The notes under the pieces were generated by a model, which was given only the letters and a program-made list of their open reading frames with translations, was not told the DNA's origin and did no database searches. Shown in pieces: positions 6,536-22,188 of a DNA stretch of 64,000 bases (within the stretch, counting starts at the first letter, position 1; each line of letters starts with the position of its first letter). The DNA is taken from sequence record LC819008.1; one strand, given 5' to 3'. The translations under genes and the position numbers were made by a program.

Positions 6536-8611
6536 ATGTCCGATCCCGTGACTAGCTATCCGTTTGACCCCACAGGGCAGGCGGCTAGCAACCGAATCGT
6601 GGATGAACAGATCGTCGTCCTCCCTCCGGGTGACCGACTGTTCCAGTTCGCCATGCCTGTCTTCTGTCCTTTCTTCGAGGAAGGACACTCACTGAAGCTG
6701 CGTGATATCAATAACAACGTCACACCATTAGTAATGGGTGTCGACTATTACCTCAGTCACAAGTTCATGGATGCCTCCTTGGCTACCATGCACCCGATCT
6801 GGGGTTCGGTCAGCTTTCTGAAGCCGATCAGCGGTGTTCTGCTGATGACGTACAACACCCTCGGTGGTGATTGGACGATCGATCAGGCGACGATTACCGA
6901 AATCCTGATGAACACGAGCCAGAACCCGCGAATCACCACGTGGGAACAGGTCGTGGAACGTCCGGTGGATTTCCCGGTGATCGATCACCCGTGGGATCTC
7001 GCAGATATGGTTGGCATGTCGGAAATCTACGGCGTGCTGGAGAACTTCTACACCGCTTACCTCGCGTCTTTGGACCCGAATGGTGGCGGTGGCGGTTCCT
7101 CGATCATCATCGATCACATCAACAACAAGAACAACCCTCACCAGGTGACGGCGGCTCAGGCCGGTGCTTACAGCACGCTCCAGATCGACACGATGCTGGG
7201 CGGCTATGTCAAGACTACTGGTACTGCTGCGAACTCGACCCAGTTCAACGGGAAGACGTACGCTCAGATGCTCACTGACGTGGCTGGGGTGAAGGTCGCA
7301 AACGCCGCCGCTGCAGACAATGCAACACATGCTGTCACGGCTGATACGGCAACGAACGCCAACGCGCTCGGCAACAAGAGCCTGTCTCAGCTGATGACTG
7401 ACGTCGCAGCTACGAAGGTGGCAAACGCTGCTCACGCAGACAATGCCGACCACGCAACGAACGCTGACCTGGCTACCAACTCCAACCAGTTGGGTGGCCA
7501 GTCGCTGACCCAGGTACTCGCCGCGGCTCAGGCTCAAACGGCTGCAGACTCCGCCAAATTCAACGGCAAGAACTATGCTGATGCAAAGGCAGACATTCTT
7601 TCCGGACAGGCAGCAGACTCGGCTCTGTTCAACGGTCAAACGTTGGCAGAGATCATGGCAACGCTCCAGCAAGCTACGGGCGACGCCAGCACGCTGAATG
7701 GCAAGTCGTATACCGACATCATGGCGGCAGTGAAGACCACCAAGGTCGACAATGCTACCAGTGCGGATACGGCAGCCAACGCAACAGCACTCGGCGGCCA
7801 GACACTCTCGCAGATTCTGACGTCGGTGGCAGGTGTGGTTCCTGACCTGGCGCACAACTCGGAAGCTGTGTACGGCTACACGTTCGACCAGCTGGTCACC
7901 GCTATCGGACAAAGCACGACCTGGGTGAACGGCCTCGACTACCTGTGCGTTGATCTCGATCTGGAACATGCCACGTTGCAGTCGCCGGCGAATGGCGGTA
8001 CGGTTGACAATTCGTACCACTACCTGTATGTCGGTTCGTTCCCGATTCCGACGACGGGTTCCAGCAACCAGTACTACGACCCGACTCAAGAGCTTTATAG
8101 CTCATCGATGGACTTCTTCATCTACGGTCAGTCGAAGACTCAGCGTCTGCGTGCAAACTTGCAGGTGAACGCCGACAACAAGACGATGGGCATCACGTAC
8201 TACAATGATACCGGACTGGATGTATCGGTCGCGGGTCTGGGCTTCCGCACGGTTGCCAGTACGCTGAAGTCCTCGGATAACTCGCAGACGGCAAACGTCA
8301 ACGAAGTTTATCTGAAAGTCAAGACGAGCGAAAACGTCCGTCGTGTTGGTATCTTCCAATTCACGAAGAACAGCTTCGTCATCGACGAATCTGAATCGCT
8401 GAGTCTCTACGACTCGACGTTCGTGAATCTGAATGGCGTGACCTGGGTCAATCCGAGTCAAACCGCTCAGGAAGCCGCAAACGCTGCTGCTGTTACGGCA
8501 GAAGCTTCGGCACGTGGAACTGCTGATGCGGCAATCCGCACGGACACTCAGGCAGCGCTGGACGCACTGGCTGATCAGATCAACTCTCTCACCAGCACTC
8601 CGGCTGCTTAA
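6536..8611 (+). CDS. Tail fibre protein (phiKZ gp131-family N-terminus)
   Basis: YPFDPTG...N-x-I-x-x-E N-terminus, HINNKNNPHQVTAAQ motif, Ala/Asn-rich repeats (NS-x-Q-F/L-N/G-G-K/Q-T/S) and a distinct C-terminal domain. Confidence 0.75.
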   Translation: MSDPVTSYPFDPTGQAASNRIVDEQIVVLPPGDRLFQFAMPVFCPFFEEGHSLKLRDINNNVTPLVMGVDYYLSHKFMDASLATMHPIWGSVSFLKPISGVLLMTYNTLGGDWTIDQATITEILMNTSQNPRITTWEQVVERPVDFPVIDHPWDLADMVGMSEIYGVLENFYTAYLASLDPNGGGGGSSIIIDHINNKNNPHQVTAAQAGAYSTLQIDTMLGGYVKTTGTAANSTQFNGKTYAQMLTDVAGVKVANAAAADNATHAVTADTATNANALGNKSLSQLMTDVAATKVANAAHADNADHATNADLATNSNQLGGQSLTQVLAAAQAQTAADSAKFNGKNYADAKADILSGQAADSALFNGQTLAEIMATLQQATGDASTLNGKSYTDIMAAVKTTKVDNATSADTAANATALGGQTLSQILTSVAGVVPDLAHNSEAVYGYTFDQLVTAIGQSTTWVNGLDYLCVDLDLEHATLQSPANGGTVDNSYHYLYVGSFPIPTTGSSNQYYDPTQELYSSSMDFFIYGQSKTQRLRANLQVNADNKTMGITYYNDTGLDVSVAGLGFRTVASTLKSSDNSQTANVNEVYLKVKTSENVRRVGIFQFTKNSFVIDESESLSLYDSTFVNLNGVTWVNPSQTAQEAANAAAVTAEASARGTADAAIRTDTQAALDALADQINSLTSTPAA

Positions 8612-8622
8612 TCTGAGGAATC

Positions 8623-9744
8623 ATGAGCGACGTCAACATCACTCCCGTCTCACATGTTTTCGACGAGACCGGCACCCTTGCCGAGAACTACGTCGAGAAC
8701 GAACAACGAGATCTGGCACAGCGCAACATCCGCGCTGCTTGCACGCGATACGGTGCTTTCTTCATCGAATCGTTCAAGATCCGGGACGCCAACGGCAATC
8801 CGCTTGCGGCGAACCAATACCAGTTTGGCCTGTTCGCAGAAGAACTGTCCGAAAAGACCGGTAAGGAAATCGCAGGTGCGGTGATCATCACCGACCCGGC
8901 AGTGATTTCGCCTGTCTTCATGGACTACCAATGTGTCGGTGGTCCGTGGGGCGCAACCAACGAGCAGATCATCGATCTGTTCACGGCGTTGATGTCTGAC
9001 GACCGTCCTGTGACGTGGCCGAACATTCTGGGTAAACCGGATGGCTTCAAGCCCGCTCACCACTTCCAGGACATCGGTGACCTCTTCGGTGCCGAGTACT
9101 TCGTCAATGCGCTGGAGCGTCTGACTAACGCGTACCTCATGGGCGACAATGCGTCGCACGATGAGATTCTGCGTAACATCGATCAGCTGCGTCAGGACAT
9201 GAATCAGGGCTTGACTGACCTGAGCAATGCTCTGAAGGCATACGCGGATGCAGGTGATGCACGTGTTCAGGCTAACCTGGATAACGAAGCACAAATCCGC
9301 GCTCAGGCTGATACGACGCTCCAGGGCAACATCAACACGGAAGCGACGACTCGCGGCAATGCCGACACGACTCTGCAGAACAACATCAACGCCGCGATCA
9401 CGCATGCGGATAACGGCGATGCTGCACTTCAGCAGAACATCAACTCGGAAGCCACGGCCCGTCAGAACGCCGACACGGCACTCAATACGAGTATCAATTC
9501 GGTGAACACGGCTCTCGCCACTCACGTGGCCGCAAAGGGCAACGTGCACAGCCTGACACCTGCGCAGCTGGGCGTCTATACGACTGCTCAGGTGGACGCA
9601 CTGATTGCTCAGATCAACAACCAGCTGACCGGCTATGTCAAGAAGAATGCCGGCGAAGACACCTCGCTTACCGTGAGCGGCGGTGTGTTGTATGGCTGGG
9701 TGGGTGGTAACTGGCGTGCAGTTTGGCCGCCCCAGTGGCAATAA
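8623..9744 (+). CDS. Tail fibre protein, paralog of 6536 at the N-terminus
   Basis: VFDETGTLAENYVENE start, WPNILGKP...PAHH motif, E-A-x-x-R-x-N-A-D-T-x-L coiled-coil repeats, HVAAKGNVHSLTPAQLG, Trp-rich tip GWVGGNWRAVWPPQWQ. Confidence 0.75.
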   Translation: MSDVNITPVSHVFDETGTLAENYVENEQRDLAQRNIRAACTRYGAFFIESFKIRDANGNPLAANQYQFGLFAEELSEKTGKEIAGAVIITDPAVISPVFMDYQCVGGPWGATNEQIIDLFTALMSDDRPVTWPNILGKPDGFKPAHHFQDIGDLFGAEYFVNALERLTNAYLMGDNASHDEILRNIDQLRQDMNQGLTDLSNALKAYADAGDARVQANLDNEAQIRAQADTTLQGNINTEATTRGNADTTLQNNINAAITHADNGDAALQQNINSEATARQNADTALNTSINSVNTALATHVAAKGNVHSLTPAQLGVYTTAQVDALIAQINNQLTGYVKKNAGEDTSLTVSGGVLYGWVGGNWRAVWPPQWQ

Positions 9745-9809: not shown

Positions 9810-10298
9810 ATGACCATAGTCTTGAGACATATCTCGTTGGATGATCTACATCTCGACGAGCTGCTGTTTTCGCCGTATCCGTACGAACAACAGATGGTGA
9901 AGTACATCACTGCTGACGGACGACAACTTACGCCGAATGATGCTTCTGAAGTTGGTACCATGAAGCAGTTCGGTACGATCAAAATCGAAGGCATGGAAAA
10001 GATCTCGAAGAAGGTCTTTGATGCTATTAAGAAGTTCTCGCATGATGGTCCTTTGACCTGTCATGTCTTTATCGCAGCTGAAGGTGCCCCCAGTTTTCCG
10101 GATCACACCGATCCGGACGACGTCATGCTTTATGTCGTCGATGGAATAAAAACGGTAATCATTGATGGTACGGCCCATGTTCTGAACGCCGGCCAGTCCA
10201 TTTATATTCCCGCTGGTGTGGTACACCGTGCAATCAACACTTCCTCCTCAGTGATGATGAGCATCGGCTTTGAATCCTACATTGTGGAGAAACTTTAA
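9810..10298 (+). CDS. JmjC/Cupin_4-like Fe(II)/2OG oxygenase
   Basis: SFPDHTDPDDV (HxD), VDGIK, YIPAGVVHRA (distal His); ATG at 9810 after SD agggga. Confidence 0.8.
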   Translation: MTIVLRHISLDDLHLDELLFSPYPYEQQMVKYITADGRQLTPNDASEVGTMKQFGTIKIEGMEKISKKVFDAIKKFSHDGPLTCHVFIAAEGAPSFPDHTDPDDVMLYVVDGIKTVIIDGTAHVLNAGQSIYIPAGVVHRAINTSSSVMMSIGFESYIVEKL

Positions 10299-10300
10299 AA

Positions 10301-11365
10301 ATGCATCGCACGGTATATATCAAAACAACGGAAGCGTGCAATCTGAACTGCAAGCATTGCTTTACCGGGGGCAGTCAACCGAAGCGTGAATTCCTCGATG
10401 TGGAAAGAACGATCGACTGGGTTCGACGTCTGTTTGAACACTTGAGTTTCGAGGACCACACGCACTTCGAACTCCACGGTGGTGAGCCGTTTCTCCTGCC
10501 CGTCAAGCAGTTGAAGGAACTGACCAAAGGTATTCGTACCTGGGGTCCGGTCAAGCACTCGATCGGTGCGACCACGAATCTGGTTTACAAGTTGACGGAT
10601 GAGCTCCTCTGGTTCATTCGCAACGATCTGGAAAGCATCGGGACGTCCTGGGATCCGGATATCCGGTTCAAGAACGACAAGCAGTACCAGCTGTGGTGGG
10701 AGAACATGAAGACCATCACGAATCACTGTGATGTCACACTGAACGTGAGTGTCTCCCGCAAGCTGACGGAAATGAACGTCAGCGATCTGCTGATGTATCT
10801 GCGTGACACTGGTGCTTCCAAGGTGCAATTCGAACGCATCACCCAGAACGGGAACGCGAAGAAGAATCTGGCTCTTTTCCCCACGAATGCAGAAATCAAC
10901 GACTGGTATCTGCGCCTGCACAACGCGTCCGAGAAGCTGAATGCTCGCGACTGGTTTTACAACGCAGCACTGGAAGACGTGTATGCAAAATTCGAAAATG
11001 GCAATGCTTGCTCTGGCACGTTCTGTCGGAATTGCGAAGAGACCATCTTTACGCTCAACGCGGACGGCAGCATTGGGGGTTGCGCCAATTCGGCGCCAGA
11101 GGAATCATTTGGACATATCGACCAGGAGATTTCCGAGCTGTTCTCTTCCCCCCGTCGACTTGATGGAATTGTCAACGAGAGAATCCGTAACGAAAATTGT
11201 TACGTTTGCCCTGTTGCCGCTTACTGTGGCGGGGATTGCCACCGATTGGCTTGGGAAGGTAGTGTCTGTGCTGCACCGCGGCAGCTGATGAAGAAGCTGG
11301 CCGGCCTGCCGTTAGACGAAGCCGTCCTGAACACGAAACGTATTATTCCCATCATGCAGGTATAA
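10301..11365 (+). CDS. Radical SAM/SPASM enzyme 1
   Basis: CNLNCKHC, HGGEP, C-terminal CSGTFCRNC...GGC...CYVCPVAAYCGGDC...C SPASM pattern. Confidence 0.92.
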   Translation: MHRTVYIKTTEACNLNCKHCFTGGSQPKREFLDVERTIDWVRRLFEHLSFEDHTHFELHGGEPFLLPVKQLKELTKGIRTWGPVKHSIGATTNLVYKLTDELLWFIRNDLESIGTSWDPDIRFKNDKQYQLWWENMKTITNHCDVTLNVSVSRKLTEMNVSDLLMYLRDTGASKVQFERITQNGNAKKNLALFPTNAEINDWYLRLHNASEKLNARDWFYNAALEDVYAKFENGNACSGTFCRNCEETIFTLNADGSIGGCANSAPEESFGHIDQEISELFSSPRRLDGIVNERIRNENCYVCPVAAYCGGDCHRLAWEGSVCAAPRQLMKKLAGLPLDEAVLNTKRIIPIMQV

Positions 11366-11371
11366 GGAAAT

Positions 11372-11932
11372 ATGAGTACTTACCGTACAGACGTCGACGC
11401 CGTAGCCCAGGCGTACGTACGTAACCAGGTGAACGGGAGCATTAACCCGTTCCGCTCGGACTGGGCACCGGGCTATACGAACACCGGCTTGCTGGGTTGG
11501 ATCTCGCAAGATCCCCCGGCATCGCATCCGTCGTCCAATGGCGAACTCAGCACCGCCGGTAACACGATGGTGACCAACCAGGTTCGCAATGCGATGATTG
11601 ATCTGGGCAACTACTACGGCTGGATCGCCAAGGGCCATTACGGTCTGCAGTCGACCAACCAGAGCGGCGCGAACTACTTGCAATACGAAGGCTACGGCTA
11701 CTTCGTGTTCAACGGTGCAGCGCCTGGTGCTCAGGATCACGCGAATCGCGTGGCGGCAGATCTGAACACTGCTGGGACGATGAACGGTACGATTCGATAT
11801 CAGTCGCTCATCGACTTCTACAACTTCGCGTGGAGCATCATCTGGAATCGTAAGGACGACCTGCAAGTCGAACTCACGGTTTGCCATTCGTCGTGCCACA
11901 CCTCGTGCCACGGCTCCCGCGGCCGTCGTTAA
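11372..11932 (+). CDS. Putative modification target with C-terminal (CHxS)3-RGRR
   Basis: All three Cys are in the last 16 residues, CHSSCHTSCHGSRGRR; SD aagga; directly downstream of rSAM 1. Confidence 0.75.
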   Translation: MSTYRTDVDAVAQAYVRNQVNGSINPFRSDWAPGYTNTGLLGWISQDPPASHPSSNGELSTAGNTMVTNQVRNAMIDLGNYYGWIAKGHYGLQSTNQSGANYLQYEGYGYFVFNGAAPGAQDHANRVAADLNTAGTMNGTIRYQSLIDFYNFAWSIIWNRKDDLQVELTVCHSSCHTSCHGSRGRR

Positions 11933-11941
11933 GGAGATATC

Positions 11942-13009
11942 ATGATCAATCTGTTCGATCGTGTCTATCTGCGACACGACAACGTTCTCGCCCGTGGTGA
12001 AGGTCAGAAGAAGCTGATCATCAGCCCGAAAGTCAAAGAGATCGCGTACGTCACCGATGCACTTCAGCAACAACAAGCTGGCATCCTCGGCACGTACGAG
12101 ACGTTCGCCGATGCCATCCATTACGCTGGCGACATCAATGCGTTCTGGGGCCAGCTGCGCACCAAGGCGAAGATCGTCATCATCGCTGACCGTGTGACCG
12201 TCGCTACGCTGCTCGTACAGTACTGGAAGGCAATCTTCCAGAACCCGTCGAAAGAAAGCCTGTATCTCCTGTACGAGATCATGGTGAACAACGAGAACCT
12301 GCATTCGCACCGTCCGACGGAAAAGCGCACGCATCTGTTCTCGCCCAATTCGACGCCGGGCGATGTCGAAAAGCTCACGGAAGAAGAGTTCCAGGAAATC
12401 TTCGACAAGAATGAAGCGGCACTGATCGACTTCTCGTCGGATGCTCAGCTGCCGAGCATTCCGTTCGAATATTTGCTGATGTCATATCTGGCAGATCCGA
12501 AGGACGAACTCGTCAAGCGAGTGCTCTTCCAGAAGCTCGACGGCATCATGCGCAGCAACATCGTCGCCAAGCTGATCGGTGGGCGTGAAGAACTCATGTT
12601 CGAATCGCACAACTACTATCTGCTTACGAGCGATGGTCCGGAAGAACTGATCGTCGACCCGATCGGTTACATGAAGAAGAGCGGTCATCTGGCATGGGTC
12701 ATGGACGAAGCATTTGTCTACGGCAACGAAGACGAGATCCTCGCGAAGTATTCGCTGGATCAGATCAAGTTCTTCTTCGAACAGATCAAGCGTCTGGTGC
12801 TGGAAGATGAATCGATCTTCGTGGCGATCGACTGCGTGAAGAAGAAACAATTCGCGCGCCTGATCGAATACGACATCGACGATCATCAGGGTAACTTCTT
12901 CGGCACGGGTGCGTTCGTGAACAAGATCAACGGTCTGTTGGTTTCGTTCGCGTATCAACTCAAGCGCATGGGGAACGTGAATCTCCTGAAGCAGTACGAA
13001 CTGAAGTAA
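11942..13009 (+). CDS. Hypothetical protein, cluster-associated (355 aa)
   Basis: SD aaggag, strong genome-type codon bias; no recognisable motif. Confidence 0.75.
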   Translation: MINLFDRVYLRHDNVLARGEGQKKLIISPKVKEIAYVTDALQQQQAGILGTYETFADAIHYAGDINAFWGQLRTKAKIVIIADRVTVATLLVQYWKAIFQNPSKESLYLLYEIMVNNENLHSHRPTEKRTHLFSPNSTPGDVEKLTEEEFQEIFDKNEAALIDFSSDAQLPSIPFEYLLMSYLADPKDELVKRVLFQKLDGIMRSNIVAKLIGGREELMFESHNYYLLTSDGPEELIVDPIGYMKKSGHLAWVMDEAFVYGNEDEILAKYSLDQIKFFFEQIKRLVLEDESIFVAIDCVKKKQFARLIEYDIDDHQGNFFGTGAFVNKINGLLVSFAYQLKRMGNVNLLKQYELK

Positions 13010-13018
13010 TTCCAACTG

Positions 13019-13057
13019 CTGCCTGACTCCTTCGGGAGTCGGGTAGTATCTTTTTTT
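13019..13057 (+). terminator. Rho-independent terminator
   Basis: ctgcctgactcc-TTCG-ggagtcgggtag followed by tatcttttttt. Confidence 0.85.
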
Positions 13058-13104
13058 CTATTGGTAGGTATTCTTTTTTGACCTATCCCACTGAGGAATA
13101 CGAA

Positions 13105-14259
13105 ATGAGTGAAGAGAAGAAAGACCCGAAGCGGATCAATTCCGAATTCATCAAAAAAGCCGAGCCCGTTGAATTTGTCGAAGATGGTGTTCGTCACATC
13201 TACTACCCGACTGTCCTCGTGACGCCGGAAGACGTGAAGCTGGTTCCGCCCTGGGAAGAATCCCCAGAAGTCATCCACTCGGATTCGAAATCGACGGACG
13301 GCCTGAAAGTCGTCAATGACGAACTGGTGTGGCCGAAAGCAGTCGAAGGCACTGAAATCAGCGAAAGCAGCAAAGTCGAAATGAATGTCGAATTCGCCGG
13401 CGGCTGGGGTGCAGAACTCCCGCCGCAAGAACAAACGCCTGAAGTCCAGACCGGCATTCCGGAAGACAAGTTGCGTGAAGTCACCGTGCCGTTCCCTGCC
13501 GACAAGATCCGCGAGTACTTCCAGGACAAGTCGCTTTTCTTCATCGCGAACTACAGCGAATCGAAGCTGAAGGGCGGTGCGTTCCTCACGTATCTGTCGA
13601 ACATCAACATCCCGTCGGATGTGAAGTTCAATACGCCGATTGGCTACGACGAGTACGCCGAGATCATGAAGGCGTACATGGAACAGCCTGGCGTGATCAA
13701 TTGCGCGGGCCTGCACGTCATGGCGGCTGAAATGCTGCTGGTCGCCAAGGGTCTGCCGTATGAGCGTTCGCCTTACGCTCTGCCGATCGACGAGAAGACC
13801 ATCCTGATGTTCATCGAAGAACATTACGAGATGGTTCAGAAGTGGCTGCACTTCATCGACTCGACGCAAGTGTTCGCCCTGCGTTCGATCAAGGCACTGA
13901 ACGACTTCTACAATCCGGACACGCGTTTCCCGGTCGTGGAAGATCGCAGCTACGTAGGCTGGAACATCGCCCAGCTGTTCCGTATTCCGGAATTCATCGC
14001 CGTGTACTTCTCGATTCCCAATGTCGAGTACAAGTTGTCGTACTTCAAGGACCAGTACGAAGAGTACATGTTCAAGAACGAGACGCTCGCCAAGTACTTC
14101 CAGTCGCAGAACAACTTCGCCGCATTGTACTTCATGCACTATGCGTCGGGCTTGTTCAAGCCGGAAGACATCAACCACGGTCTGTTCCGTATCGGCGTGT
14201 TCGATCCGGAAAGCGAGTTCTTCGAGAAGACTCCGTATGACTTTAGCATTCAAGAGTGA
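13105..14259 (+). CDS. Hypothetical protein with acidic N-terminal region, cluster-associated
   Basis: ATG at 13105 after SD gagga (track start 13078 is TTG); Glu/Pro-rich first ~110 aa then an aromatic-rich helical-looking domain. Confidence 0.75.
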   Translation: MSEEKKDPKRINSEFIKKAEPVEFVEDGVRHIYYPTVLVTPEDVKLVPPWEESPEVIHSDSKSTDGLKVVNDELVWPKAVEGTEISESSKVEMNVEFAGGWGAELPPQEQTPEVQTGIPEDKLREVTVPFPADKIREYFQDKSLFFIANYSESKLKGGAFLTYLSNINIPSDVKFNTPIGYDEYAEIMKAYMEQPGVINCAGLHVMAAEMLLVAKGLPYERSPYALPIDEKTILMFIEEHYEMVQKWLHFIDSTQVFALRSIKALNDFYNPDTRFPVVEDRSYVGWNIAQLFRIPEFIAVYFSIPNVEYKLSYFKDQYEEYMFKNETLAKYFQSQNNFAALYFMHYASGLFKPEDINHGLFRIGVFDPESEFFEKTPYDFSIQE

Positions 14260-14272
14260 TTCCAACTCTTCA

Positions 14273-15337
14273 ATGACGTTGAAGGACGCATCCCAATACC
14301 ACCTGAGCTTGAGTTTGGAGTGGCTAAAGGGATGCCAGTTCAACTGTAAAGGATGCCACGTCAATAAAAAGGCAGGGCTTCCCTTTACCGGCGACGATCT
14401 TGGTAACCTGAATCGGTGGCTTGACAGCATGCGGTGGAAAGGCAATTACCTGCCGACTATCGTGTTTCTGCAGCCCACTGACTTCTTGACTGCCGAGAAT
14501 ACCGCCGACATCCTGAAGAGTCCGTACACATACCCGACTCTGTCTGTGTTCAAACGTCTGTCGCTGCAATCGACGTTCCTGAATATGGACAACGCCGCTG
14601 AGATCGCTTCGATCCTGAAGGCACGGTTCTTTCACATGGAGTTGGAACTTAACTTCATCATCGAACCTGAGAAGGTAAACAACGAAAAGTATCTCGACAC
14701 GATTAAAGCAAATCGTGATCGCTTCATCGAGATGCTGGACTGGAAGAAGCACGTAGCGTCCTTCGCCATCATGAACGTTTATGAATACGATCGGGTGAAG
14801 AAGAACGACGTGAAGAAGATCCTGGCTGATTACCAGGCGCTTCATGACAAGATCAAGGAGAAGTTTGACTCCACGATCGATTTTAACTTCTCCATGACTC
14901 GCAATCCGTGGTGGAGTAATGAAGACGTAGCAGAAGCAGTACGTGGCGTCAGTCGAATCTTCGACGGAGGCGTGGACAATGTTTTTAACCAGACGATCCG
15001 CTTCTCGTTTGGTAAGCTGGAAGACTCGTCCATCGAAAAGCATTACAACTGGCATCAAGGACACTTGTATGTGTCGCCGATGATCTACGAGCGAATCGCA
15101 TCGTTCCATCGGAAGCTTCAGATTCCACATACGTTGTATTCCGTGTGGGAAACAGAAGACTTCGAGCGCCGGTTGCTGATCGATCAGTACCACAACTCCG
15201 AAACCAAGACCGAGTGCAATTCGTGTCGATATCAAGCCTCTTGCATCGAGCGCAATGTCCTGACGTTTATGGACATGCACGAGATCAAGGACTGCATCAT
15301 CGCCCGCAAAGCTCTCGATGCCATTAACGTCATCTGA
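14273..15337 (+). CDS. Divergent radical SAM enzyme 2
   Basis: ATG at 14273 (MTLKDASQY); CQFNCKGC; no GGEP motif (FLQPTD instead); C-terminal CNSCRYQASC...C. Confidence 0.75.
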   Translation: MTLKDASQYHLSLSLEWLKGCQFNCKGCHVNKKAGLPFTGDDLGNLNRWLDSMRWKGNYLPTIVFLQPTDFLTAENTADILKSPYTYPTLSVFKRLSLQSTFLNMDNAAEIASILKARFFHMELELNFIIEPEKVNNEKYLDTIKANRDRFIEMLDWKKHVASFAIMNVYEYDRVKKNDVKKILADYQALHDKIKEKFDSTIDFNFSMTRNPWWSNEDVAEAVRGVSRIFDGGVDNVFNQTIRFSFGKLEDSSIEKHYNWHQGHLYVSPMIYERIASFHRKLQIPHTLYSVWETEDFERRLLIDQYHNSETKTECNSCRYQASCIERNVLTFMDMHEIKDCIIARKALDAINVI

Positions 15338-15341
15338 GACG

Positions 15342-15371
15342 CATATGGAGTGGCCTAGGCCACTCCATATG
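15342..15371. repeat. Perfect 30-bp palindrome
   Basis: catatggagtggcctaggccactccatatg equals its own reverse complement; no U-tract follows. Confidence 0.95.
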
Positions 15372-15386
15372 TCCTGTGAGGAATGT

Positions 15387-16409
15387 ATGAACAACGATAT
15401 CCTGAATGAAATGCTGTCATCCAAAGTGCAAGACAGCACCGAGATCGAACACCACCTGTTCGAGTACTGCAACCTGAACTGCTCCTTCTGCGGTCAGGAT
15501 CATGACTCGAAGGTCGGTATGGAATCGATCATCGAAAAAGCCCACAAGACTGTGGACTTCATATTCCATTCGAAGAAGAAGAAACACACCATCAACGTGA
15601 TGGGTGGTGAGATCTTCAATGACAAGATCGAAACGAATGTTTTCCTGGACTACTACAAGTTCTACGAGATCATCGAAAAGGTCTGTCGCGATCTCGGAGT
15701 GGAATTCCAGATCAACTGGGTCACGAATCTCATCTTCACGGAAAACCGTGAGATGGTTCAGTGGCTTATGAACAAGACGAAGGCACATGCCAGGATCTCG
15801 ACGTCGTATGACTTCGCTGGGCGTGGGTTGGACATCAATCGTTCATTGGTGTTCAAGCACAACCTGAATCTGTTCAAGGAGCATATCGGCGTGGTTGGTT
15901 TCGTTCTCACGAAGCCTGCTATCCGTAAACTCCTCAATAGCACGGACATGTTCTTCCAGACTGTCCTGTATCCAAACTTCCCGTTGTATTTCGACTGGTA
16001 CGTACCGGAGAAGTCCTCGAACAAGATGATGCCATCTGAGCAAGAAATGCTCGATGCGCTTCTCTTTGTCGCGGATAAGTATCCGAACATCGAACCGGTT
16101 AAGTCCATGCTGGAGAACGAGCACAACAAGATGACGTGCTTCAGCCTGAACAAGACCACAATCCTGCCTGATGGTAAGGAAGTAACTTGTCGGTACCTCG
16201 AATACGACAAAGAAAAATTTAACAACGACATTGATTATTCGAGCAATGCCAACATCATCCAGGCCCACCTTGATAGAAACGAATGCTATTCGTGTCCTCA
16301 CTTTGACCGCTGCCAGTTTCGGTGTTTTGTACAAGCTGACTGGGCAGAACTTGAGCGACTCCCTTCCTGCTTCATCCGAACCTTCTTCGACAAAGTGCTC
16401 GCATCATGA
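15387..16409 (+). CDS. Radical SAM/SPASM-like enzyme 3
   Basis: ATG at 15387 after SD gagga; CNLNCSFC, MGGEIF, C-terminal C...C...CYSCPHFDRCQFRC...C. Confidence 0.88.
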   Translation: MNNDILNEMLSSKVQDSTEIEHHLFEYCNLNCSFCGQDHDSKVGMESIIEKAHKTVDFIFHSKKKKHTINVMGGEIFNDKIETNVFLDYYKFYEIIEKVCRDLGVEFQINWVTNLIFTENREMVQWLMNKTKAHARISTSYDFAGRGLDINRSLVFKHNLNLFKEHIGVVGFVLTKPAIRKLLNSTDMFFQTVLYPNFPLYFDWYVPEKSSNKMMPSEQEMLDALLFVADKYPNIEPVKSMLENEHNKMTCFSLNKTTILPDGKEVTCRYLEYDKEKFNNDIDYSSNANIIQAHLDRNECYSCPHFDRCQFRCFVQADWAELERLPSCFIRTFFDKVLAS

Positions 16410-16978
16410 AACTCATTCTTATCGCAGCTGAAGCAGCAAACAAGGTCATCGGCAACGACGGCAAGATGCCGTGGCATATTCCGGAAGACCTGTGGCACTT
16501 CAAGGAAGTGACGTCCGGCCATGCCGTTATCATGGGTCGCAAGACCTGGGAATCGCTCGGCAGCAAGCCTCTTCCCAATCGCACCAACGTAGTCGTATCG
16601 AAAACGCTCGGTCCTTTGGAAGGTGCCCATTCTGTACGCAACTTCAGAACGGCTGTCAAGACGTTGATTGCAGCCGGTTACGATCGCTCTTACGTGATTG
16701 GCGGCGAGTCGCTTTATCGCGCCGCTCTGCCGTGGGCGTCGAAGATCATCCTTACGAAGCTCTACAAGTCGTACGAAGGCGATGCGCATTTCCCGGACAT
16801 CGATCCTTTACAATGGACAGAATACGATAAAGTCGACGTACTCACTGAGCAAGGATACGGATATGTTCAGTTACGCCAAAATACTCATGACACACTTTCC
16901 CAGCCGTTCACGATTTACAAGTATATGAACGTCAATCAGCCTGATGTCGCTCGCTGGGTCGATTTGATCAAGGACTAA
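16406..16978 (+). CDS. folA: Dihydrofolate reductase
   Basis: IGNDGKMPWHIPEDL, IMGRKTWESL, PLPNRTNVVVS, VIGGESLY, GDAHFP; ATGA overlap with rSAM 3; ~30-aa C-terminal extension. Confidence 0.95.
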   Translation: MKLILIAAEAANKVIGNDGKMPWHIPEDLWHFKEVTSGHAVIMGRKTWESLGSKPLPNRTNVVVSKTLGPLEGAHSVRNFRTAVKTLIAAGYDRSYVIGGESLYRAALPWASKIILTKLYKSYEGDAHFPDIDPLQWTEYDKVDVLTEQGYGYVQLRQNTHDTLSQPFTIYKYMNVNQPDVARWVDLIKD

Positions 16979-16979
16979 A

Positions 16980-18056
16980 ATGAACCATCCCTCTTTGATC
17001 ATCAAGCCTACGGAATCGTGTAACTTCAAGTGCACGTTCTGTTCGTCGACCGATATCCAGGGAGATTCCCCTAACCTGGATATCGAGTATATCAAGCTTT
17101 ACCTGGAGCGTTTCCCTCAGACTCCGACCATCATTGTCAATGGTGGTGACCCTCTGATGATGAAGCCTGAGTACTACTGGGCGATCTTGAAGATCATCGA
17201 GGACATGGGTCTTAAAACCACGCTCTCGTTTACAAGCAATCTGTGGGCTTTCTATAAAAAGCCTAGCATGTGGGTGGACTTGTTCCGCCATCCGCTTGTA
17301 GGGGTCTCTACGAGCTTCCAGTACGGTAATTCACGGCTTAAGGGCGACCTTACTCCGTTTACCGAGGAAGAGTTCTGGGAAATTTCCAACATGATGCTCG
17401 AAATGGTTGGATATCGTCCTTCCTTCATCGCAGTCATCACGAAAGAAAATGAACATACCGCGATCAAGACTGTCGAGCTTGCTAAACAGATGGGTGTTGT
17501 CTGCAAGCTTAACTATGCAATGGCGTCGGGACCTAAGACGTGGTTCAAGGGGATCCAGATCGGCAGTGCCGACAGCACCTACGTCCTTGCCGACATCTAT
17601 GAAAAATATATCGAGATCGCCCAAGCGGGTCTCGCGCCGTGGGAACATAACACGACGGTCATGATTAACAGGCTCAAGGGCCTGCAAAATCAGATGTGTC
17701 CTCAGGCTCGCCAGTGCGATGAAGGTATTCGTGCTCTCCAGCCTGGCGGCAAGTATTACAGCTGTGGTGCGTTCGGAGACGATGGATTATATCCTATCGA
17801 CTTCGCCAATGAAATGAAGGGCGGCTTTGAAACCCCTCTTCGTCATCAGCCTGAGCTTCAATCGCTCAAGGACAGCTGCTACGAGTGCCCGATGTTTGAA
17901 ATCTGCAACGGGTGCCGTAAGACCACGCACGATCTAAAACGTCTTGACCTGGTGGAAGTCCACTGCTCCAAGATGAAGACGCTTGCTCCGAAAATCATAG
18001 AACTCAATGGGTTAACAGGAAAGCTTATTCCGACGCCCTATGTCAAGGAGACATGA
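16980..18056 (+). CDS. Radical SAM/SPASM enzyme 4
   Basis: CNFKCTFC, NGGDPL, CPQARQC...SCG...CYECPMFEICNGC...HC. Confidence 0.92.
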   Translation: MNHPSLIIKPTESCNFKCTFCSSTDIQGDSPNLDIEYIKLYLERFPQTPTIIVNGGDPLMMKPEYYWAILKIIEDMGLKTTLSFTSNLWAFYKKPSMWVDLFRHPLVGVSTSFQYGNSRLKGDLTPFTEEEFWEISNMMLEMVGYRPSFIAVITKENEHTAIKTVELAKQMGVVCKLNYAMASGPKTWFKGIQIGSADSTYVLADIYEKYIEIAQAGLAPWEHNTTVMINRLKGLQNQMCPQARQCDEGIRALQPGGKYYSCGAFGDDGLYPIDFANEMKGGFETPLRHQPELQSLKDSCYECPMFEICNGCRKTTHDLKRLDLVEVHCSKMKTLAPKIIELNGLTGKLIPTPYVKET

Positions 18057-18601
18057 TGGAACTGCTTCAGCCTTGGAAAACCAGCATCGGCAAAATGTCT
18101 GTCCTCGAATTCGTGGATATCGATGCGATGCTAAACGAAGTCATGCAGCACCCGATGGTGATGGAGAACCCGCGCAACGGCGCGCTTCGGGTGAAGTATG
18201 AGGAGTTTCCGATCTGTTCGGATGTGCTGGAGCACAAGCTTAAGCCAGAAGTCGAGAAGTACATCGAAATGGTAGGCGGGCGTCGGCCCGATCGTCTTGC
18301 ATGGAGTAGCTGGTTTCATATCTGCATGCATGGCAACGGACTGATTCCGCACTACCACGACGAAGCTCTGAATTCGGTTCTGTATTTTACAACGTCGAAG
18401 GCTAATCTGGTGCTACGCGACCCTCTGTCTTCTCAAGCAAGACAATGGCCGCAGGACATGCGCAAGAAGATGCACGCCGACCAACAGTTTCACCCAGTCA
18501 AGGGCGACTTCCTGATGTTCCCGGGATACGTCGACCATTACGTTATGGCAGATGAACCGGACTTCCGGATCTCCATGGCAACTGACTGGATCTTTAGATA
18601 A
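18053..18601 (+). CDS. Fe(II)/2OG oxygenase, TIGR02466/2OG-FeII_Oxy_5-like
   Basis: PHYH...SVLY...LVLRDP...GDFLMFPGYVDHYV...RISMA pattern. Confidence 0.8.
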   Translation: MMELLQPWKTSIGKMSVLEFVDIDAMLNEVMQHPMVMENPRNGALRVKYEEFPICSDVLEHKLKPEVEKYIEMVGGRRPDRLAWSSWFHICMHGNGLIPHYHDEALNSVLYFTTSKANLVLRDPLSSQARQWPQDMRKKMHADQQFHPVKGDFLMFPGYVDHYVMADEPDFRISMATDWIFR

Positions 18602-18609
18602 GGTAAGTC

Positions 18610-19554
18610 ATGCTGGCTAACGATTCCGGGATCATTAATGTAAGTCTCAACCCGACTTACTACTGCAACTTCCGTTGCGACTTCTGCTACCTCACGAAGA
18701 AGCAGCTGAACACTCAGGACTACCTGCCTGTGTCGGGTATCCGTAAGAAGCTTCAGGAGATCCTGGATTCGGGACACCAGATCGGTCATGTGGATTTCTA
18801 CGGCGGGGAGGTCATGCTCCTGCCGATTCCGTATCTGCTGGAAGTCGAACAGCTGTTGTTCGATGAGTTCAAGATCGAAGATGCGGAGATCATTACCAAC
18901 CTCTCGGCCTACAAAAAACCGATCGTGGAAGACACGCGATTTGGTCTTTCTGTGAGCTACGATTTCGAGCATCGAGCCCAGCACGAACACGTGTGGCAAA
19001 ACATGCTAAAAGTCCCGAAACCCTTTACTGTATTGACTTTGGGGGTGGGGGGCGTGCTTGAGAGTGACCCTGCTGAACTGGTGGAACGCATCAATTTGCT
19101 GGAGAACTGCAAGGCTTGGGAAATCAAGCCGTATAGCAAGAACCAGGCGAATCAGCTGGACGTCACAGACAAACAATTCGAAGAGTTTGTCAAGAAAATC
19201 ATCGAGTATCCGAACAAGCAGTTCGAGTTCTTGAATGAGACGAAACTTCGAACCATCAAGTTCCGCGACTACAACGCATTCTCCGACAACCACGTCTACA
19301 TCACACCCAAGGGTAACTTCGGTGTGTTGGAGTTCGACGAGAATGATCGTGAGTTCTTCCAGGAACTGAAGACCTTCGACGCTTATGTCATGTGGACTCA
19401 AGGCGAGAAGGCCCGCGTCATGTCGAACGCAACCTGTGGTAGCTGCCAGTACATGGGCAAGTGTGCATCCGAGCATCTGCGCGATGTCCAGTCCATGGAG
19501 AACAGCTGCAACGGCTTTTACAACCTGATTCAATGGTACGAGGCACGGCCATGA
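18610..19554 (+). CDS. Radical SAM enzyme 5 with C-terminal Cys cluster
   Basis: CNFRCDFC, YGGEV, CGSCQYMGKC...SC. Confidence 0.9.
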   Translation: MLANDSGIINVSLNPTYYCNFRCDFCYLTKKQLNTQDYLPVSGIRKKLQEILDSGHQIGHVDFYGGEVMLLPIPYLLEVEQLLFDEFKIEDAEIITNLSAYKKPIVEDTRFGLSVSYDFEHRAQHEHVWQNMLKVPKPFTVLTLGVGGVLESDPAELVERINLLENCKAWEIKPYSKNQANQLDVTDKQFEEFVKKIIEYPNKQFEFLNETKLRTIKFRDYNAFSDNHVYITPKGNFGVLEFDENDREFFQELKTFDAYVMWTQGEKARVMSNATCGSCQYMGKCASEHLRDVQSMENSCNGFYNLIQWYEARP

Positions 19555-20108
19555 GCGTAAGTCGTATGTGGGAAACTCCCATCGGCGAACGTAATCTGGA
19601 ACCGAAGGTTACGTTCTACAAATTGCTGGATGAGGTAATGAGTCATCCAGCAATTATGCAAGACATCAAAGTCGGCTCGCTTCGTATCTCCGATCGAAAA
19701 GACGAATTCCCTGAGTGCACGCGTTTCATCGAGCACCATCTCATGGACGAGATGAAAGGGTACGTCTATCAGGAATTCGGCGCTCGCGTCAAAGACGTGA
19801 AGTGGTCGGCCTGGGTTCATACGTGCTTCGGTGGTACGGGACTCGTTCCGCACTACCACATGGGGCCTGAGCATTTCGCCTCCATTCTGTATCTGACTGA
19901 CTCGAAAGCAAGTCTGATCATTCGAGATCCGCGTGCCAACATGGTCCGTAATTTCCCTCAGGAGTTGAAACATAACTTCGCGGACTACAAGGTCGATCCT
20001 CGGGTAGGTGACTTCGTGATTTTCCCTACTTACCTCGATCATTACGTGATGGCGGCTGAGCCTGACATGCGCGTCTCGATCGCAATCGACTGGTGCCTTG
20101 ATGATTAA
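19551..20108 (+). CDS. Fe(II)/2OG oxygenase, paralog of 18053
   Basis: ATGA overlap with rSAM 5; PHYH...SILY...LIIRDPR...GDFVIFPTYLDHYVMAAEPDMRVSIAIDW aligns by eye with 18053. Confidence 0.8.
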   Translation: MSVSRMWETPIGERNLEPKVTFYKLLDEVMSHPAIMQDIKVGSLRISDRKDEFPECTRFIEHHLMDEMKGYVYQEFGARVKDVKWSAWVHTCFGGTGLVPHYHMGPEHFASILYLTDSKASLIIRDPRANMVRNFPQELKHNFADYKVDPRVGDFVIFPTYLDHYVMAAEPDMRVSIAIDWCLDD

Positions 20109-20769
20109 CCCTTTGAAACAAGAAGACATCGACCGTCTGAAGGAAACGATGAAGACTTCTCCCATCATTCTCGAACGCAAGCCGTTCAATTCGACCGACT
20201 TTCTGGGCGATTACCTGACGAAGGGGTTCTACTCCTTTAGTGCGAAGCATCTCATGGCGCCTATCGAAATCCAGCGTTTCGAAGTCGTCAAGGTGAAACA
20301 CGAAGACAACTGCTTTCATGCAGAAGGTCACGAGTTCCACAACGACTACATGCGTCTGTCAATCGAACAACTCGGCCGCGATCTGCGTCGCTGGCTCCAT
20401 GAAGTGCCGGTTGAACTCACGTTCGACTTCTTCACAGACTCGGTCAACGATCACGTGCAGCACTGGCATAGCGATGCGCAGTACGCAATGCCCGAACAAA
20501 ACGCAACCATCAACTGTTTCTTCGACAACACGTCGGAAGCAATCGGCGGGCGTTTCGACATGGCTCCGTATAGCGCGGATATCATCGGTACGAAAAAGCT
20601 CCCGGGCTATTTCACGTCGATCTACCCGCAAGCCTACGACGTGATCATCTTCAACCAGAACCGGAACTTCCTGCATAAGGCAATTCCATCGCACATGAAG
20701 CGTCGCATGGTTTCATTCGCGGCAACCTTCGCAGACATCAACCCACTTCTTCCGAATTGGCAGCCATGA
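20101..20769 (+). CDS. Fe(II)/2OG oxygenase (HxD...H type)
   Basis: WHSD, NCFFD...IGG, IIFNQNRNFLHKA, RRMVSF. Confidence 0.75.
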   Translation: MINPLKQEDIDRLKETMKTSPIILERKPFNSTDFLGDYLTKGFYSFSAKHLMAPIEIQRFEVVKVKHEDNCFHAEGHEFHNDYMRLSIEQLGRDLRRWLHEVPVELTFDFFTDSVNDHVQHWHSDAQYAMPEQNATINCFFDNTSEAIGGRFDMAPYSADIIGTKKLPGYFTSIYPQAYDVIIFNQNRNFLHKAIPSHMKRRMVSFAATFADINPLLPNWQP

Positions 20770-21347
20770 TTGACACCGGCGAATTCATCAGCGAGTATTT
20801 GACCAAAGGCTTCTATCGTTTCGATGCATCGGAGGTTCTTTCCAGATTCGATATCAAGGCTTTTGGGACGATCAAGAAAACGGACGCAACATTCGACACG
20901 GAAGATCCGGCAGAGCGCTACAAGGCGTATACGCCAGCGCAAACGGTACTCCTGCGTCAATTGTTGAAGGATATCTCTGAAGTCTACTTCAGCGACCTCA
21001 ACCATGAGCTCCGTTTCAACGATATGTGGGCGTCGGCGAACCCGTACACCTACTCCTGGCACAACGACACACTGCGCTGCTGGCCTGGTTTCAACAGCAA
21101 TGTGAACTGCTATTTCGATAGCATGGACGAAGGTATCGGCGGTGCGTTGCAGATGCACCCGATGGTGGAAGATTACGATTCGATCGCTGACGACAGCCCG
21201 CTGATTGCCGAAGTCTTCCCCCAGAAGTACGACATCATCGTCATCAACCAGAACAGCACGTTCCTGCACCGCGTCCGTCATACGGAAGAGAAGCGCACGA
21301 TGCTCTCGTTCGCAGCAGGCTTCTTCGACTTCAACCCGGTCTTCTGA
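20766..21347 (+). CDS. Fe(II)/2OG oxygenase, paralog of 20101
   Basis: ATGA overlap; YLTKGFY shared with 20101; WHND, NCYFD...IGG, IVINQNSTFLHRV, RTMLSF. Confidence 0.75.
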   Translation: MIDTGEFISEYLTKGFYRFDASEVLSRFDIKAFGTIKKTDATFDTEDPAERYKAYTPAQTVLLRQLLKDISEVYFSDLNHELRFNDMWASANPYTYSWHNDTLRCWPGFNSNVNCYFDSMDEGIGGALQMHPMVEDYDSIADDSPLIAEVFPQKYDIIVINQNSTFLHRVRHTEEKRTMLSFAAGFFDFNPVF

Positions 21348-21349
21348 TC

Positions 21350-21769
21350 ATGCAAGAATGGAAGATGTGGCGAGAGGTCTACAACAACCTCGTTACGGAT
21401 CACACCGATGCAAGACACAAGCACGCCTTCGTCGTCAGTGACACAGTCGTCGACGACGCAATCGAATACATCACGAATCGCAGTGAACTGGGCCGCTATC
21501 CAGGCAAAAGTCGAATCGTGGCTATCATCTATGCGTTCTGCGTTTCAGAAACTTACGGAGAAGATTTTCTCCAGGTTCTCGACGACCCTGAACTCTTCCA
21601 TAGCCCGGACGAATTCTTTGTCCCGTATTCGCAAGACAAAGACACGTACGACGCGATCATTGCCCGTCTCAAAGACATCCCTGGTTGGATCATGGGGGGT
21701 TGGGCACCAAAGACGGTTGAATACTTCAACCTGGAGTGTACTGAAGCGGGCGTAGCATCGATCAGCTGA
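21350..21769 (+). CDS. Hypothetical protein, last gene of the enzyme run
   Basis: Starts 2 nt after the preceding stop; no recognisable motif. Confidence 0.7.
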   Translation: MQEWKMWREVYNNLVTDHTDARHKHAFVVSDTVVDDAIEYITNRSELGRYPGKSRIVAIIYAFCVSETYGEDFLQVLDDPELFHSPDEFFVPYSQDKDTYDAIIARLKDIPGWIMGGWAPKTVEYFNLECTEAGVASIS

Positions 21770-21801: not shown

Positions 21802-22188
21802 GTGGGTTTCGATCTCACCAAACTCGGCAACGCTTTTCAGACTTTGACCACGTGGGTAACCGCTGGTCTGGCAAAGAAAGCAGACGCCACAGCAACATCC
21901 AATGCTCTGGCCACTAAGGCAGATGCTACTGCGACGACCAATGCACTGGCTGCCAAAGCCAATGCTACAGATCTCGCAACCACCAACACAAATCTGTCGA
22001 ACCTCACGACTACCGTGGGAACGAAGGCAGATGCGACGGCAACGTCGAATGCATTGGCAACGAAAGCTGATGCAACCGCCACCACCAATGCCTTGGCAGG
22101 CAAGCAGAGTACGGTTCTGACAGGAACGGCTGCTCCTGCTGCTGGCGTGGGTAATAACGGTGACGTGTTCCTCGTAACCGATACCTGA
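21802..22188 (+). CDS. Short fibre-like protein with 13-aa repeats
   Basis: GTG start after SD agggga; KADATAT(S/T)NALA repeated four times; C-terminal GTAAPAAGVGNNGDVF motif typical of fibre ends. Confidence 0.7.
   Translation: MGFDLTKLGNAFQTLTTWVTAGLAKKADATATSNALATKADATATTNALAAKANATDLATTNTNLSNLTTTVGTKADATATSNALATKADATATTNALAGKQSTVLTGTAAPAAGVGNNGDVFLVTDT

Follow-up and report, generated by a model that had tools for sequence, protein, structure and literature searches.

A radical-SAM and oxygenase gene cassette tied to a virion protein with a near-invariant Cys-His-Ser tail in Ralstonia phage FLC4-4C and other phages

The stretch of DNA analysed here, referred to as the window, comprises 64,000 nucleotides (62001-126000) of record LC819008.1, the genome of Ralstonia phage FLC4-4C, with window base 1 corresponding to record base 62001. 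FLC4-4C is a member of the RSL2/RSF1/FLC6/SURPRISE13 group of phiKZ-related jumbo phages. Positions 9810-21769 of the window hold gp68-gp82 (g1-g15 in this work), a cassette of 15 open reading frames (ORFs) that are all on the + strand and free of internal stops. They encode five radical S-adenosylmethionine (radical-SAM, rSAM) proteins, five cupin or 2-oxoglutarate (2OG)-type oxygenases, a dihydrofolate reductase (DHFR), three proteins without known function and a 186-residue protein, g3, whose C-terminal tail is the main subject of this analysis. Most of the starts overlap or abut the preceding stop, the intergenic gaps being -23, -8, -4 (four times), 1, 2, 2, 6, 8, 9, 49 and 68 nt. Tail-fibre-like and other virion structural genes lie on the flanks. 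An original prediction, made from the letters of the window, had described 15 co-oriented genes placed between tail-fibre genes, and both parts of that description hold.

The g3 protein ends with CHSSCHTSCHGSRGRR directly at its stop codon, that is, with three Cys-His-x-Ser units followed by Arg-Gly-Arg-Arg. When 5.8 billion proteins were searched with g3, every homologue, at identities as low as 35%, kept the last 17 residues unchanged, and proteins with hardly alignable bodies shared the same ending; within the family, body identity drops to 23-35% while the tail stays near-invariant. A profile search of 1.84 billion representatives returned at least 589 clusters at E 0.001 or better, nearly all of them aligning to the protein end. 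Among the matches listed, the first Cys-His, the last His and the terminal Arg-x-Arg-Arg were near-universal, with slight variation in the middle units. A back-translated scan of IMG/VR recovered 91 ORFs of 124-319 aa with the tail motif on 79 viral contigs. The motif stood directly before the stop in all 91, and this recurrence at the C-terminus argues against a chance origin. Sixty-three distinct 48-nt DNAs were found to encode 14 tail peptides, with Ser drawn from both codon families, and the 19 DNAs for one identical tail peptide were on average 72% identical. Because synonymous codons vary so freely, the constraint must act on the peptide rather than on an RNA or DNA element, and recent transfer does not account for the conservation.

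AlphaFold2 modelled g3 as a globular alpha/beta body (predicted local distance difference test, pLDDT, 88; predicted template modelling score, pTM, 0.81) with a disordered tail (pLDDT <50). No domain was recognised in g3 by Pfam or NCBIfam, no signal peptide or peptidoglycan-binding domain was found in it, and Foldseek returned no PDB match to its fold at E 0.001 or better. In BFVD the fold matched only uncharacterised family members, including larger paralogues. Three of these matches, from Myoviridae sp. ctijX18 (A0A8S5USJ8, A0A8S5USJ7 and A0A8S5USV2; 504-660 aa), show that the g3 fold also occurs in much larger paralogous proteins. A sub-type in IMG/VR (L022, L029, L059 and L054 in our locus numbering) carries two tandem short tail genes (124 and 127 aa) right after a giant protein, followed by up to five tandem g6-type rSAM paralogues.

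The tail gene and the enzymes around it were found to travel together. A recurrent order was observed, consisting of the cupin gene (g1), an rSAM/SPASM gene (g2), the tail gene (g3), g5-like and g4-like genes, an rSAM gene (g7), a gene for a ~190-aa protein, an rSAM gene (g9), genes for 2OG proteins, an rSAM gene (g11) and g15. A g2-type rSAM gene lies directly upstream of the tail gene in 46 of the 54 loci with enough upstream DNA, and a cupin gene upstream of it in 42 of the same 54, while g5 lies downstream in 61 of the 65 loci with enough downstream DNA. Where at least 7.5 kb of downstream sequence was available (14 loci), g5, g4 and at least one further rSAM gene were present in every case, a g11-type rSAM gene in 12 and a 2OG protein gene also in 12. 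Complete loci carry 4-6 rSAM genes.

Sampling from the g5 side gave the same picture. An RSL2-biased g5 alignment gave three loci, and a diverse alignment was then used; all 79 evaluable IMG/VR loci had an upstream ORF ending in a Cys-His repeat/RxRR tail, 37 of them with tail variants missed by the strict motif scan. Among GenBank phages, g2 and g5 homologues were found in the same 15 records, namely the RSL2 group, Agrobacterium phage Atu_ph07, Sinorhizobium phage Phosso and Pseudomonas phage pPa_SNUABM_DT01, and the tail gene lay between them in all 15. Enzyme clusters lacking a Cys-His-repeat ORF, which would have spoken against the original prediction, were thus not observed from either side. 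Marine family members gave essentially no tblastn match among GenBank phages. The related Ralstonia jumbo phages RP12 and RP31 are reported to have a run of radical-SAM, Fe-S oxidoreductase, MoaA-like and MgoB-like genes (PMC5468394); tblastn with g2, g3 and g5 did not return these phages, whose genes may represent a more distant form of the cassette. Linkage of the tail gene to the same set of enzymes extends over T4-like marine phages, several jumbo phage lineages and Bdellovibrionota chromosomes, and the system occurs in hundreds of uncultured phages.

For bacteria, one genome per GTDB species was scanned with a looser DNA pattern. Of the 47 loci obtained, about 39 are genuine in that they contain a tail ORF together with enzymes of the same families, and about 27 of the genuine loci come from Bdellovibrionota assemblies (L106, L108, L129 and about 24 more), a strong enrichment. 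Some 220-250 kb contigs assigned to Bdellovibrionota metagenome-assembled genomes may be binned jumbo phages; three others, of 1.29, 2.45 and 2.84 Mb, are chromosomal. Two of these three chromosomal contigs carry a minimal set, the tail gene with two rSAM genes, beside lspA and lolA, and no fibre gene was found within the 8-kb stretches around the minimal loci. The hits in the Actinokineospora chromosome (L117) and in L087-L092, L109 and L120 were rejected as false positives in high-GC DNA, arising for example from a Cys-His dipeptide run, with no family ORF or enzymes nearby.

Across very different phages, the cassette always lies within a block of baseplate and tail-fibre genes. On marine contigs it is preceded by genes for a T4 gp8-like baseplate wedge protein, a giant DUF4815 protein, a 75-aa virion protein and a fibre-like protein, and is followed by a gene for an LtfC-like fibre-assembly protein. 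A giant structural protein precedes it in Atu_ph07 and Phosso, a central spike gene is near it in DT01, and fibre-like genes flank it in the RSL2 group. In RSF1 only, a GIY-YIG nuclease gene (L002, 4514-5431) is found just upstream of the cupin gene and looks like a homing-endonuclease insertion at the cassette border.

Direct evidence for a place in the particle comes from Atu_ph07, whose virion proteins have been tabulated by gel slice (PMC6102473, Table S5). Computed masses match exactly for gp170 (31.89 kDa; AUZ94952, the tail-bearing homologue, encoded at 10044-10934 of locus L133), gp176 (66.07 kDa; AUZ94958) and gp177 (21.66 kDa; AUZ94959). In virions gp170 was detected by 8 unique peptides (35% coverage) in slices 1-9 with a maximum in slice 1, which is also the peak for proteins of ~76-139 kDa; sheath and wedge proteins of 117-137 kDa peak in slice 2, and other proteins of ~30 kDa in slices 7-8 (PMC6102473). 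Of the proteins below 40 kDa with at least three peptides in that table, gp170 is the only one to peak in slice 1 (PMC6102473, Table S5). The neighbouring gp169 (g5-like), gp171 (rSAM) and gp172 (cupin) are not in the Atu_ph07 virion list (PMC6102473, Table S5). These data show that a g3-family member is a component of the particle in a high-mass form stable to sodium dodecyl sulfate (SDS) and heat, explicable by a covalent link or by a very stable oligomer. They also give direct support to the earlier suggestion that the pathway might decorate a virion or tail component. The top-slice anomaly of gp170 draws no comment in the original Atu_ph07 paper (PMC6102473).

The genes of the cassette and their neighbours are listed in Table 1.

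Table 1. Positions in the window of the cassette genes, the g3 tail and the adjoining genes, with the basis of each assignment.
Feature	Position	Strand	Basis
gp66, upstream neighbour, 691-aa tail/tail-fibre-like virion protein	6536..8611	+	PHROG matches to virion structural, tail and tail-fibre families
gp67, upstream neighbour, 373-aa virion structural/tail-fibre-like protein	8623..9744	+	phrog_2163 (E 2e-85) plus tail and tail-fibre PHROGs; annotated putative virion structural protein
g1, cupin-fold metalloenzyme, core member	9810..10298	+	Cupin_2, JmjC_2, HxD...H pattern
g2, radical SAM/SPASM enzyme	10301..11365	+	PF04055 and TIGR04085 over cut-off
g3, 186-aa family-specific protein, globular body (residues 1-168) and disordered C-terminal tail; putative substrate and virion component	11372..11932	+	AlphaFold2, family search, Atu_ph07 homologue
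Tail of g3, residues 171-186, CHSSCHTSCHGSRGRR, plus stop codon	11882..11932	+	near-invariant in homologues, always terminal
g4, 355-aa conserved partner, no recognised fold	11942..13009	+	family fam5/28
g5, 393 aa, variable N-terminal extension and conserved ~270-aa domain	13078..14259	+	obligate partner of tail gene
g6, divergent radical SAM, partial C-terminal Cys array	14237..15337	+	CX3CX2C, family hhalign
g7, radical SAM/SPASM enzyme	15387..16409	+	CX3CX2C and full SPASM array
g8, DHFR, lineage-specific passenger	16406..16978	+	PF00186, E 5e-47
g9, radical SAM/SPASM enzyme	16980..18056	+	PF04055, 46.0 bits
g10, 2OG-Fe(II) oxygenase, Oxy_5 type	18053..18601	+	PF13759, 34.2 bits
g11, radical SAM, partial auxiliary Cys array	18610..19554	+	PF04055, 30.3 bits; fam9
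g12, 2OG-Fe(II) oxygenase, Oxy_5 type	19551..20108	+	PF13759, 37.8 bits
g13, divergent 2OG-oxygenase-like	20101..20769	+	fam6 hhalign, HxD pattern
g14, divergent 2OG-oxygenase-like, g13 paralogue	20766..21347	+	PF13640, 17.8 bits (under cut-off); PHROG shared with g13; fam6
g15, 139-aa conserved partner closing the cassette	21350..21769	+	fam14
Downstream neighbour, 128-aa Ala/Thr-repeat protein; fibre genes resume	21802..22188	+	repeats seen in translation; then a concanavalin-like protein on the minus strand

On the - strand, long ORFs of 340-496 aa (12955-14445, 14324-15472 and 11312-12334) lie across g3-g7. No family backs them, and base composition is their most likely source; when genes were called naively by longest ORF, they displaced real ones.

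All five rSAM proteins (g2, g6, g7, g9 and g11) carry the CX3CX2C motif within the first 33 residues, starting at residues 13-33 (13 in g2, 14 in g9 and 33 in g6), which leaves no space for an N-terminal recognition domain. PF04055 (cut-off 29.5 bits) is passed by g2 (30.6 bits), g9 and g11, while g7 (23.4 bits) falls under the cut-off and g6 gives no match. The SPASM model TIGR04085 (cut-off 27 bits), with which a scan had been proposed, is passed by g2 at 32.2 bits, g9 remaining below it at 21.0. A full SPASM-type array, CX2CX5CX2-3C, is present in g2 (residue 300), g7 and g9 (residue 300), and only a partial one, CX2CX5C, in g6 (residue 327) and g11. By profile-profile comparison (hhalign) the g6 family aligns with other rSAM families at 81-89% probability, and 31 of its 31 members carry CX3CX2C; g11 forms a family of its own (fam9), related to the family fam0 at 98.9%. 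By motif, all five can be assigned to the radical SAM superfamily, g6 only through the family-level profile comparison. The count of five CxxxCxxC proteins in the original prediction is borne out in this way. Its division into four clear SPASM-like proteins and one divergent protein needs revision, the arrays being closer to three full and two partial.

The deposited start of gp73 (g6; 14429-15337 in GenBank) sits 3' of the CX3CX2C motif near 14333, and the exclusion of the motif explains why gp73 is labelled 'hypothetical'. A start at the ATG at 14237, which places the first 23 nt of the gene inside g5, brings the motif back into the protein.

With about 350 aa and the cluster motif at the extreme N-terminus, the rSAM proteins are built like SPASM enzymes that act on proteins. 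Their best weak matches in NCBIfam (DynA, PapB, anSME, YhhB, FxsB, HxsB and HxsC) are all peptide or protein maturases; g2 gave near-full-length weak alignments to the DynA, PapB and anSME models, and g9 weak matches to DynA, anSME and HxsC. PDB sequence and profile searches with g2 and g9 gave no match.

Of the five Fe(II)/2OG oxygenases originally predicted, g10 and g12 stand, both exceeding the PF13759 cut-off of 27 bits. For g13 and g14 the backing is weaker: both are under Pfam cut-offs, their family (fam6) aligning to 2OG families at 93-94% (hhalign) with the HxD...H pattern kept. The fifth, g1, is better described as a cupin (Cupin_2, 53.7 bits; JmjC_2, 32.3 bits over a short C-terminal match; HxD...H pattern) whose relatives in the PDB are generic cupins and which presumably uses 2OG. 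DHFR was correctly identified as a gene. Its membership in the system is contradicted by its occurrence in two of about 80 homologous loci, both in the RSL2 group, and this confinement marks it as a lineage-specific passenger. FLC4-4C has one DHFR gene in the cassette, and SURPRISE13, RSF1, RsoM3USA and others have two in tandem (12458-13635 in L001, 12689-13805 in L002 and 12787-13915 in L003).

The three remaining partners gave few clues. No match to g4 was found in Pfam, NCBIfam or annotated PHROGs, although its family (fam5/28) is present in 14 of the 14 loci with at least 7.5 kb downstream. The g5 alignment (A4) contains numerous invariant polar residues, and the core was modelled by AlphaFold2 with pLDDT >90; neither sequence and profile searches nor Foldseek gave a PDB match for g5. 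Members of the g15 family (fam14) trail the g11-type rSAM gene in both phage and Bdellovibrionota loci, and no known domain was found in g15 with Pfam, NCBIfam or PHROGs. NCBIfam has no model for g3, g4, g5, g15 or their Bdellovibrionota versions, and the PHROGs of these four are 'unknown function' families only. By hhalign, g4, g5 and g15 are unrelated to rSAM or 2OG families; the idea that g4 and g5 are degenerate rSAM proteins was rejected at a probability below 1%.

Based on these results, the cassette is probably a dedicated post-translational maturation pathway for the tail of the virion protein g3. The observations behind this reading are the gene content, the near-invariance of the tail, its obligate linkage to the enzymes, the structural-gene context and the presence of one homologue in virions; from them we infer the tail as substrate, the chemistry and the role at the envelope. 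Late in infection, the g3 tail would be covalently modified in the cytoplasm by the co-encoded enzymes, that is, by the 4-6 radical-SAM enzymes without a leader-recognition domain, the cupin and several 2OG-type oxygenases, together with g4, g5 and g15. The likeliest reactions would be radical cross-links at Cys (thioethers) and/or at His-x-Ser (a carbon bridge or cyclophane-like link, as in the HXS effector HxsA), with the cupin and 2OG enzymes as candidates for hydroxylation of His or Arg. Matured whole g3 would then be built into the baseplate/tail-fibre region of the virion, where its rigid, cationic and possibly metal-binding or cross-linking end may act at the host envelope.

Several points weigh against this proposal. 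Among the matches listed, a few family members keep a single tail Cys, so that Cys cross-links cannot be the sole essential modification; a comparison of tail Cys number with enzyme set through such variants was limited to short contigs, and an IMG/VR scan for the single-Cys variant found none. The virion evidence comes from one distant homologue, and an oligomer that resists SDS could explain its top-slice peak without any covalent link; slice 1 is likewise the peak of two further proteins (32 and 36 kDa), both with few peptides. The predicted virion protein lists of FLC6 and S13 omit the g3 orthologue. Furthermore, every enzyme match to characterised maturases in NCBIfam is far under the curated cut-off, and for this reason the chemistry cannot be read from homology, and g4, g5 and g15 yielded no functional clue.

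Other explanations of the locus were considered. The g3 tail might be left unmodified as a metal- or Fe-S-binding end, either as a metal site of the fibre or as a scaffold or electron partner for rSAM enzymes that target the giant or fibre proteins. Cys/His pairs are classic metal ligands, the T4 long-fibre tip and spike apex proteins are stapled by His-bound metal, and genes for fibre and giant structural proteins always lie next to the cassette. A simple metal site would form without enzymes, however, and here the tail gene and the enzymes are inseparable; the minimal Bdellovibrionota loci combine the tail gene with two rSAM genes away from any fibre gene (within 8 kb), and the tail is far better conserved than any neighbouring structural protein. 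This explanation is considered unlikely. The locus could also be read as a classical ribosomally synthesised and post-translationally modified peptide (RiPP) system, in which the 170-residue body of g3 is a long leader and the 16-residue tail is released as a diffusible metallophore, signal or inhibitor. No protease or exporter can be recognised in the conserved cassette, the rSAM proteins have no space for a leader-recognition domain, and the body has a confident fold that is kept family-wide with large inserted variable domains and, in the Atu_ph07 homologue, is found in virions at 35% coverage. Against these stand the layout, with a long N-terminal part and a short near-invariant C-terminal core beside SPASM enzymes, the disordered and accessible tail in the AlphaFold2 model, and the fact that an invariant core is typical of peptide-derived cofactors. 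As a whole, the RiPP reading appears improbable.

Release of a peptide is made unlikely by the lack of a recognisable protease or exporter, by a body that is folded and conserved and by the presence of that body in virions. The original prediction had left open whether the modifications act on the 186-residue protein or on a peptide released from it; the virion homologue favours the whole protein. A small effector, also suggested there, is disfavoured on the same grounds, the N-terminal domain being folded and found in particles. Hypermodification of DNA or nucleotides, with DHFR supplying folate chemistry and g3 incidental, is very improbable. SPASM-type enzymes in a structural block, tied to a virion protein, do not suit it; no kinase, glycosyltransferase, nucleotide-binding or DNA-binding family belongs to the conserved set, and DHFR is restricted to the RSL2 group (two of about 80 loci). 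In its favour are the location of DHFR inside the cluster and the placing of DHFR under pyrimidine metabolism by the authors of related phage genomes, as well as the radical-SAM enzymes present in some phage base-modification pathways. The lineage-specific distribution of DHFR led to rejection of the DNA-modification reading.

If maturation of the g3 tail is accepted, a broader and more doubtful possibility is that phages of several unrelated lineages, along with predatory Bdellovibrionota, equip a surface or virion protein with a cross-linked Cys/His/Arg end-piece made by a dedicated multi-enzyme rSAM/oxygenase pathway. A covalent 'warhead' or staple built in this way by enzymes would be a first for a virion. 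Such an end-piece would work at the Gram-negative envelope, in adhesion, in covalent locking to the giant baseplate protein, in metal capture or in the escort of DNA through the periplasm. Marine T4-like phages, soil jumbo phages of 490 kb and Bdellovibrio-like predators all share a near-unchanged tail, suggesting a common and important envelope target or mechanism. Maturation of virion proteins is generally seen as folding, proteolysis and, rarely, autocatalytic cross-links; about ten enzymes for 16 residues of one virion protein would constitute a new layer of phage assembly chemistry. The cassette also offers new enzyme families, with five rSAM clades and the g4, g5 and g15 folds, and a likely substrate at hand, which is rare and useful for enzymology. 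Cultivable carriers exist in the RSL2/FLC group, Atu_ph07, Phosso and pPa_SNUABM_DT01.

No description of the cassette was found in the literature on phage SPASM or RiPP systems, SPASM with tail fibres and Bdellovibrio radical SAM, nor was a curated family, in line with the earlier statement that no characterised phage pathway with this architecture is known. In papers on the carrier phages the genes are listed only under accessory radical-SAM or 2OG proteins.

Of the known systems, the one nearest in kind is the HXS antiphage system (HxsA/B/C/D), in which rSAM enzymes mature HxsA as a whole protein, with a shift of +8 Da on its His/Ser motif (PMC13128918). Both systems have a whole protein with His-x-Ser units flanked by basic residues, which paired radical-SAM enzymes mature in HXS and probably in the cassette; the cassette product, like the HXS effector, may act at the phage-envelope interface, and HxsB/HxsC are the best NCBIfam matches of g7 and secondary matches of g9 and g11. 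The scores are nevertheless low: for HxsB (TIGR03978, cut-off 370) g7 reached 25.0 and g11 20.9 bits, and for HxsC (TIGR03977, cut-off 267.9) g9 reached 30.0 and g7 15.9 bits. Neither HxsA nor the small HxsD gave a match in the cluster (Pfam, NCBIfam). HxsA, which is processed at its N-terminus for export, carries a peptidoglycan-binding domain and His-x-Ser repeats in tandem (PMC13128918), whereas g3 has no such domains and only three His-x-Ser units, interleaved with Cys at the extreme C-terminus. Likewise, the cassette has 4-6 rSAM enzymes with oxygenases and three further partners, and is phage-encoded with its product in the virion. Membership of the HxsB, HxsC or CXXX-type maturases, for which profile scans had been suggested, was thus excluded at the curated thresholds. 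If the end-piece described above exists, it may be what the HXS effector of bacteria, a protein that blocks DNA entry, meets on the attacking side, and the HXS defence may then be the other side of the same interface.

Protein-acting maturases offer further comparisons. The anaerobic sulfatase-maturing enzymes (anSME), which act on folded sulfatases, resemble g2 and g9 in size (~350-370 aa), in the motif at the extreme N-terminus, in having SPASM and no recognition domain, and in near-full-model alignment; they target a Cys or Ser that lies in a short motif of the full-length protein, as the enzymes of the cassette would in g3. The TIGR03942 scores of 46.2 and 34.2 bits are well below the cut-off of 349, the cluster has no sulfatase domain, the tail resembles the sulfatase motif only loosely and the cassette has several enzymes per target. 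SPASM enzymes of the ranthipeptide/SCIFF type (PapB, CteB-type, CrpA/CrpC) bridge close-set Cys as thioethers, and g2 matches the full PapB model; CrpC, for instance, forms such cross-links on a protein substrate, CrpA (PMC13692751). The PapB score (NF047865) was 48.9 bits compared with a cut-off of 340 and that of a ScfB-related model 15.5, g3 matched no SCIFF-type precursor family, and some tails have a single Cys. The three aromatic-x-small units (His-x-Ser) of the g3 tail recall triceptides, RiPPs with three-residue cyclophanes, for which HaaB and HtkB provide His-based examples (PMC11499958), the likeness being at motif level only. Although g2, g9 and g11 weakly match the cyclophane-forming maturases YhhB, FxsB, AmcB, GrrM and XyeB, the best score was 46.5 bits (YhhB, cut-off 445) and the others were lower; triceptide precursors are also short peptides with leader recognition, for which the rSAM proteins of the cassette have no space.

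More remote systems differ in kind. Classical RiPP clusters are set apart by leader recognition and by peptidase or transporter families, none of which is recognisable in the conserved cassette, although g4, g5 or g15 could possibly hide a novel protease or exporter. Of the enzymes typical of DNA hypermodification clusters (kinase, transferases, folate-dependent pyrimidine enzymes), DHFR alone is present, and nearly all homologous cassettes lack it. Metal-stapled fibre and spike tips share with g3 a short His-rich repeat at the end of a tail-associated protein and a location among fibre and baseplate genes; they form without dedicated enzymes, whereas the g3 tail is obligately tied to 4-6 rSAM enzymes and oxygenases. 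Protein maturation driven by rSAM enzymes is a known principle, and it is the setting that is new, namely a virion protein, in a system common to phages and bacterial predators.

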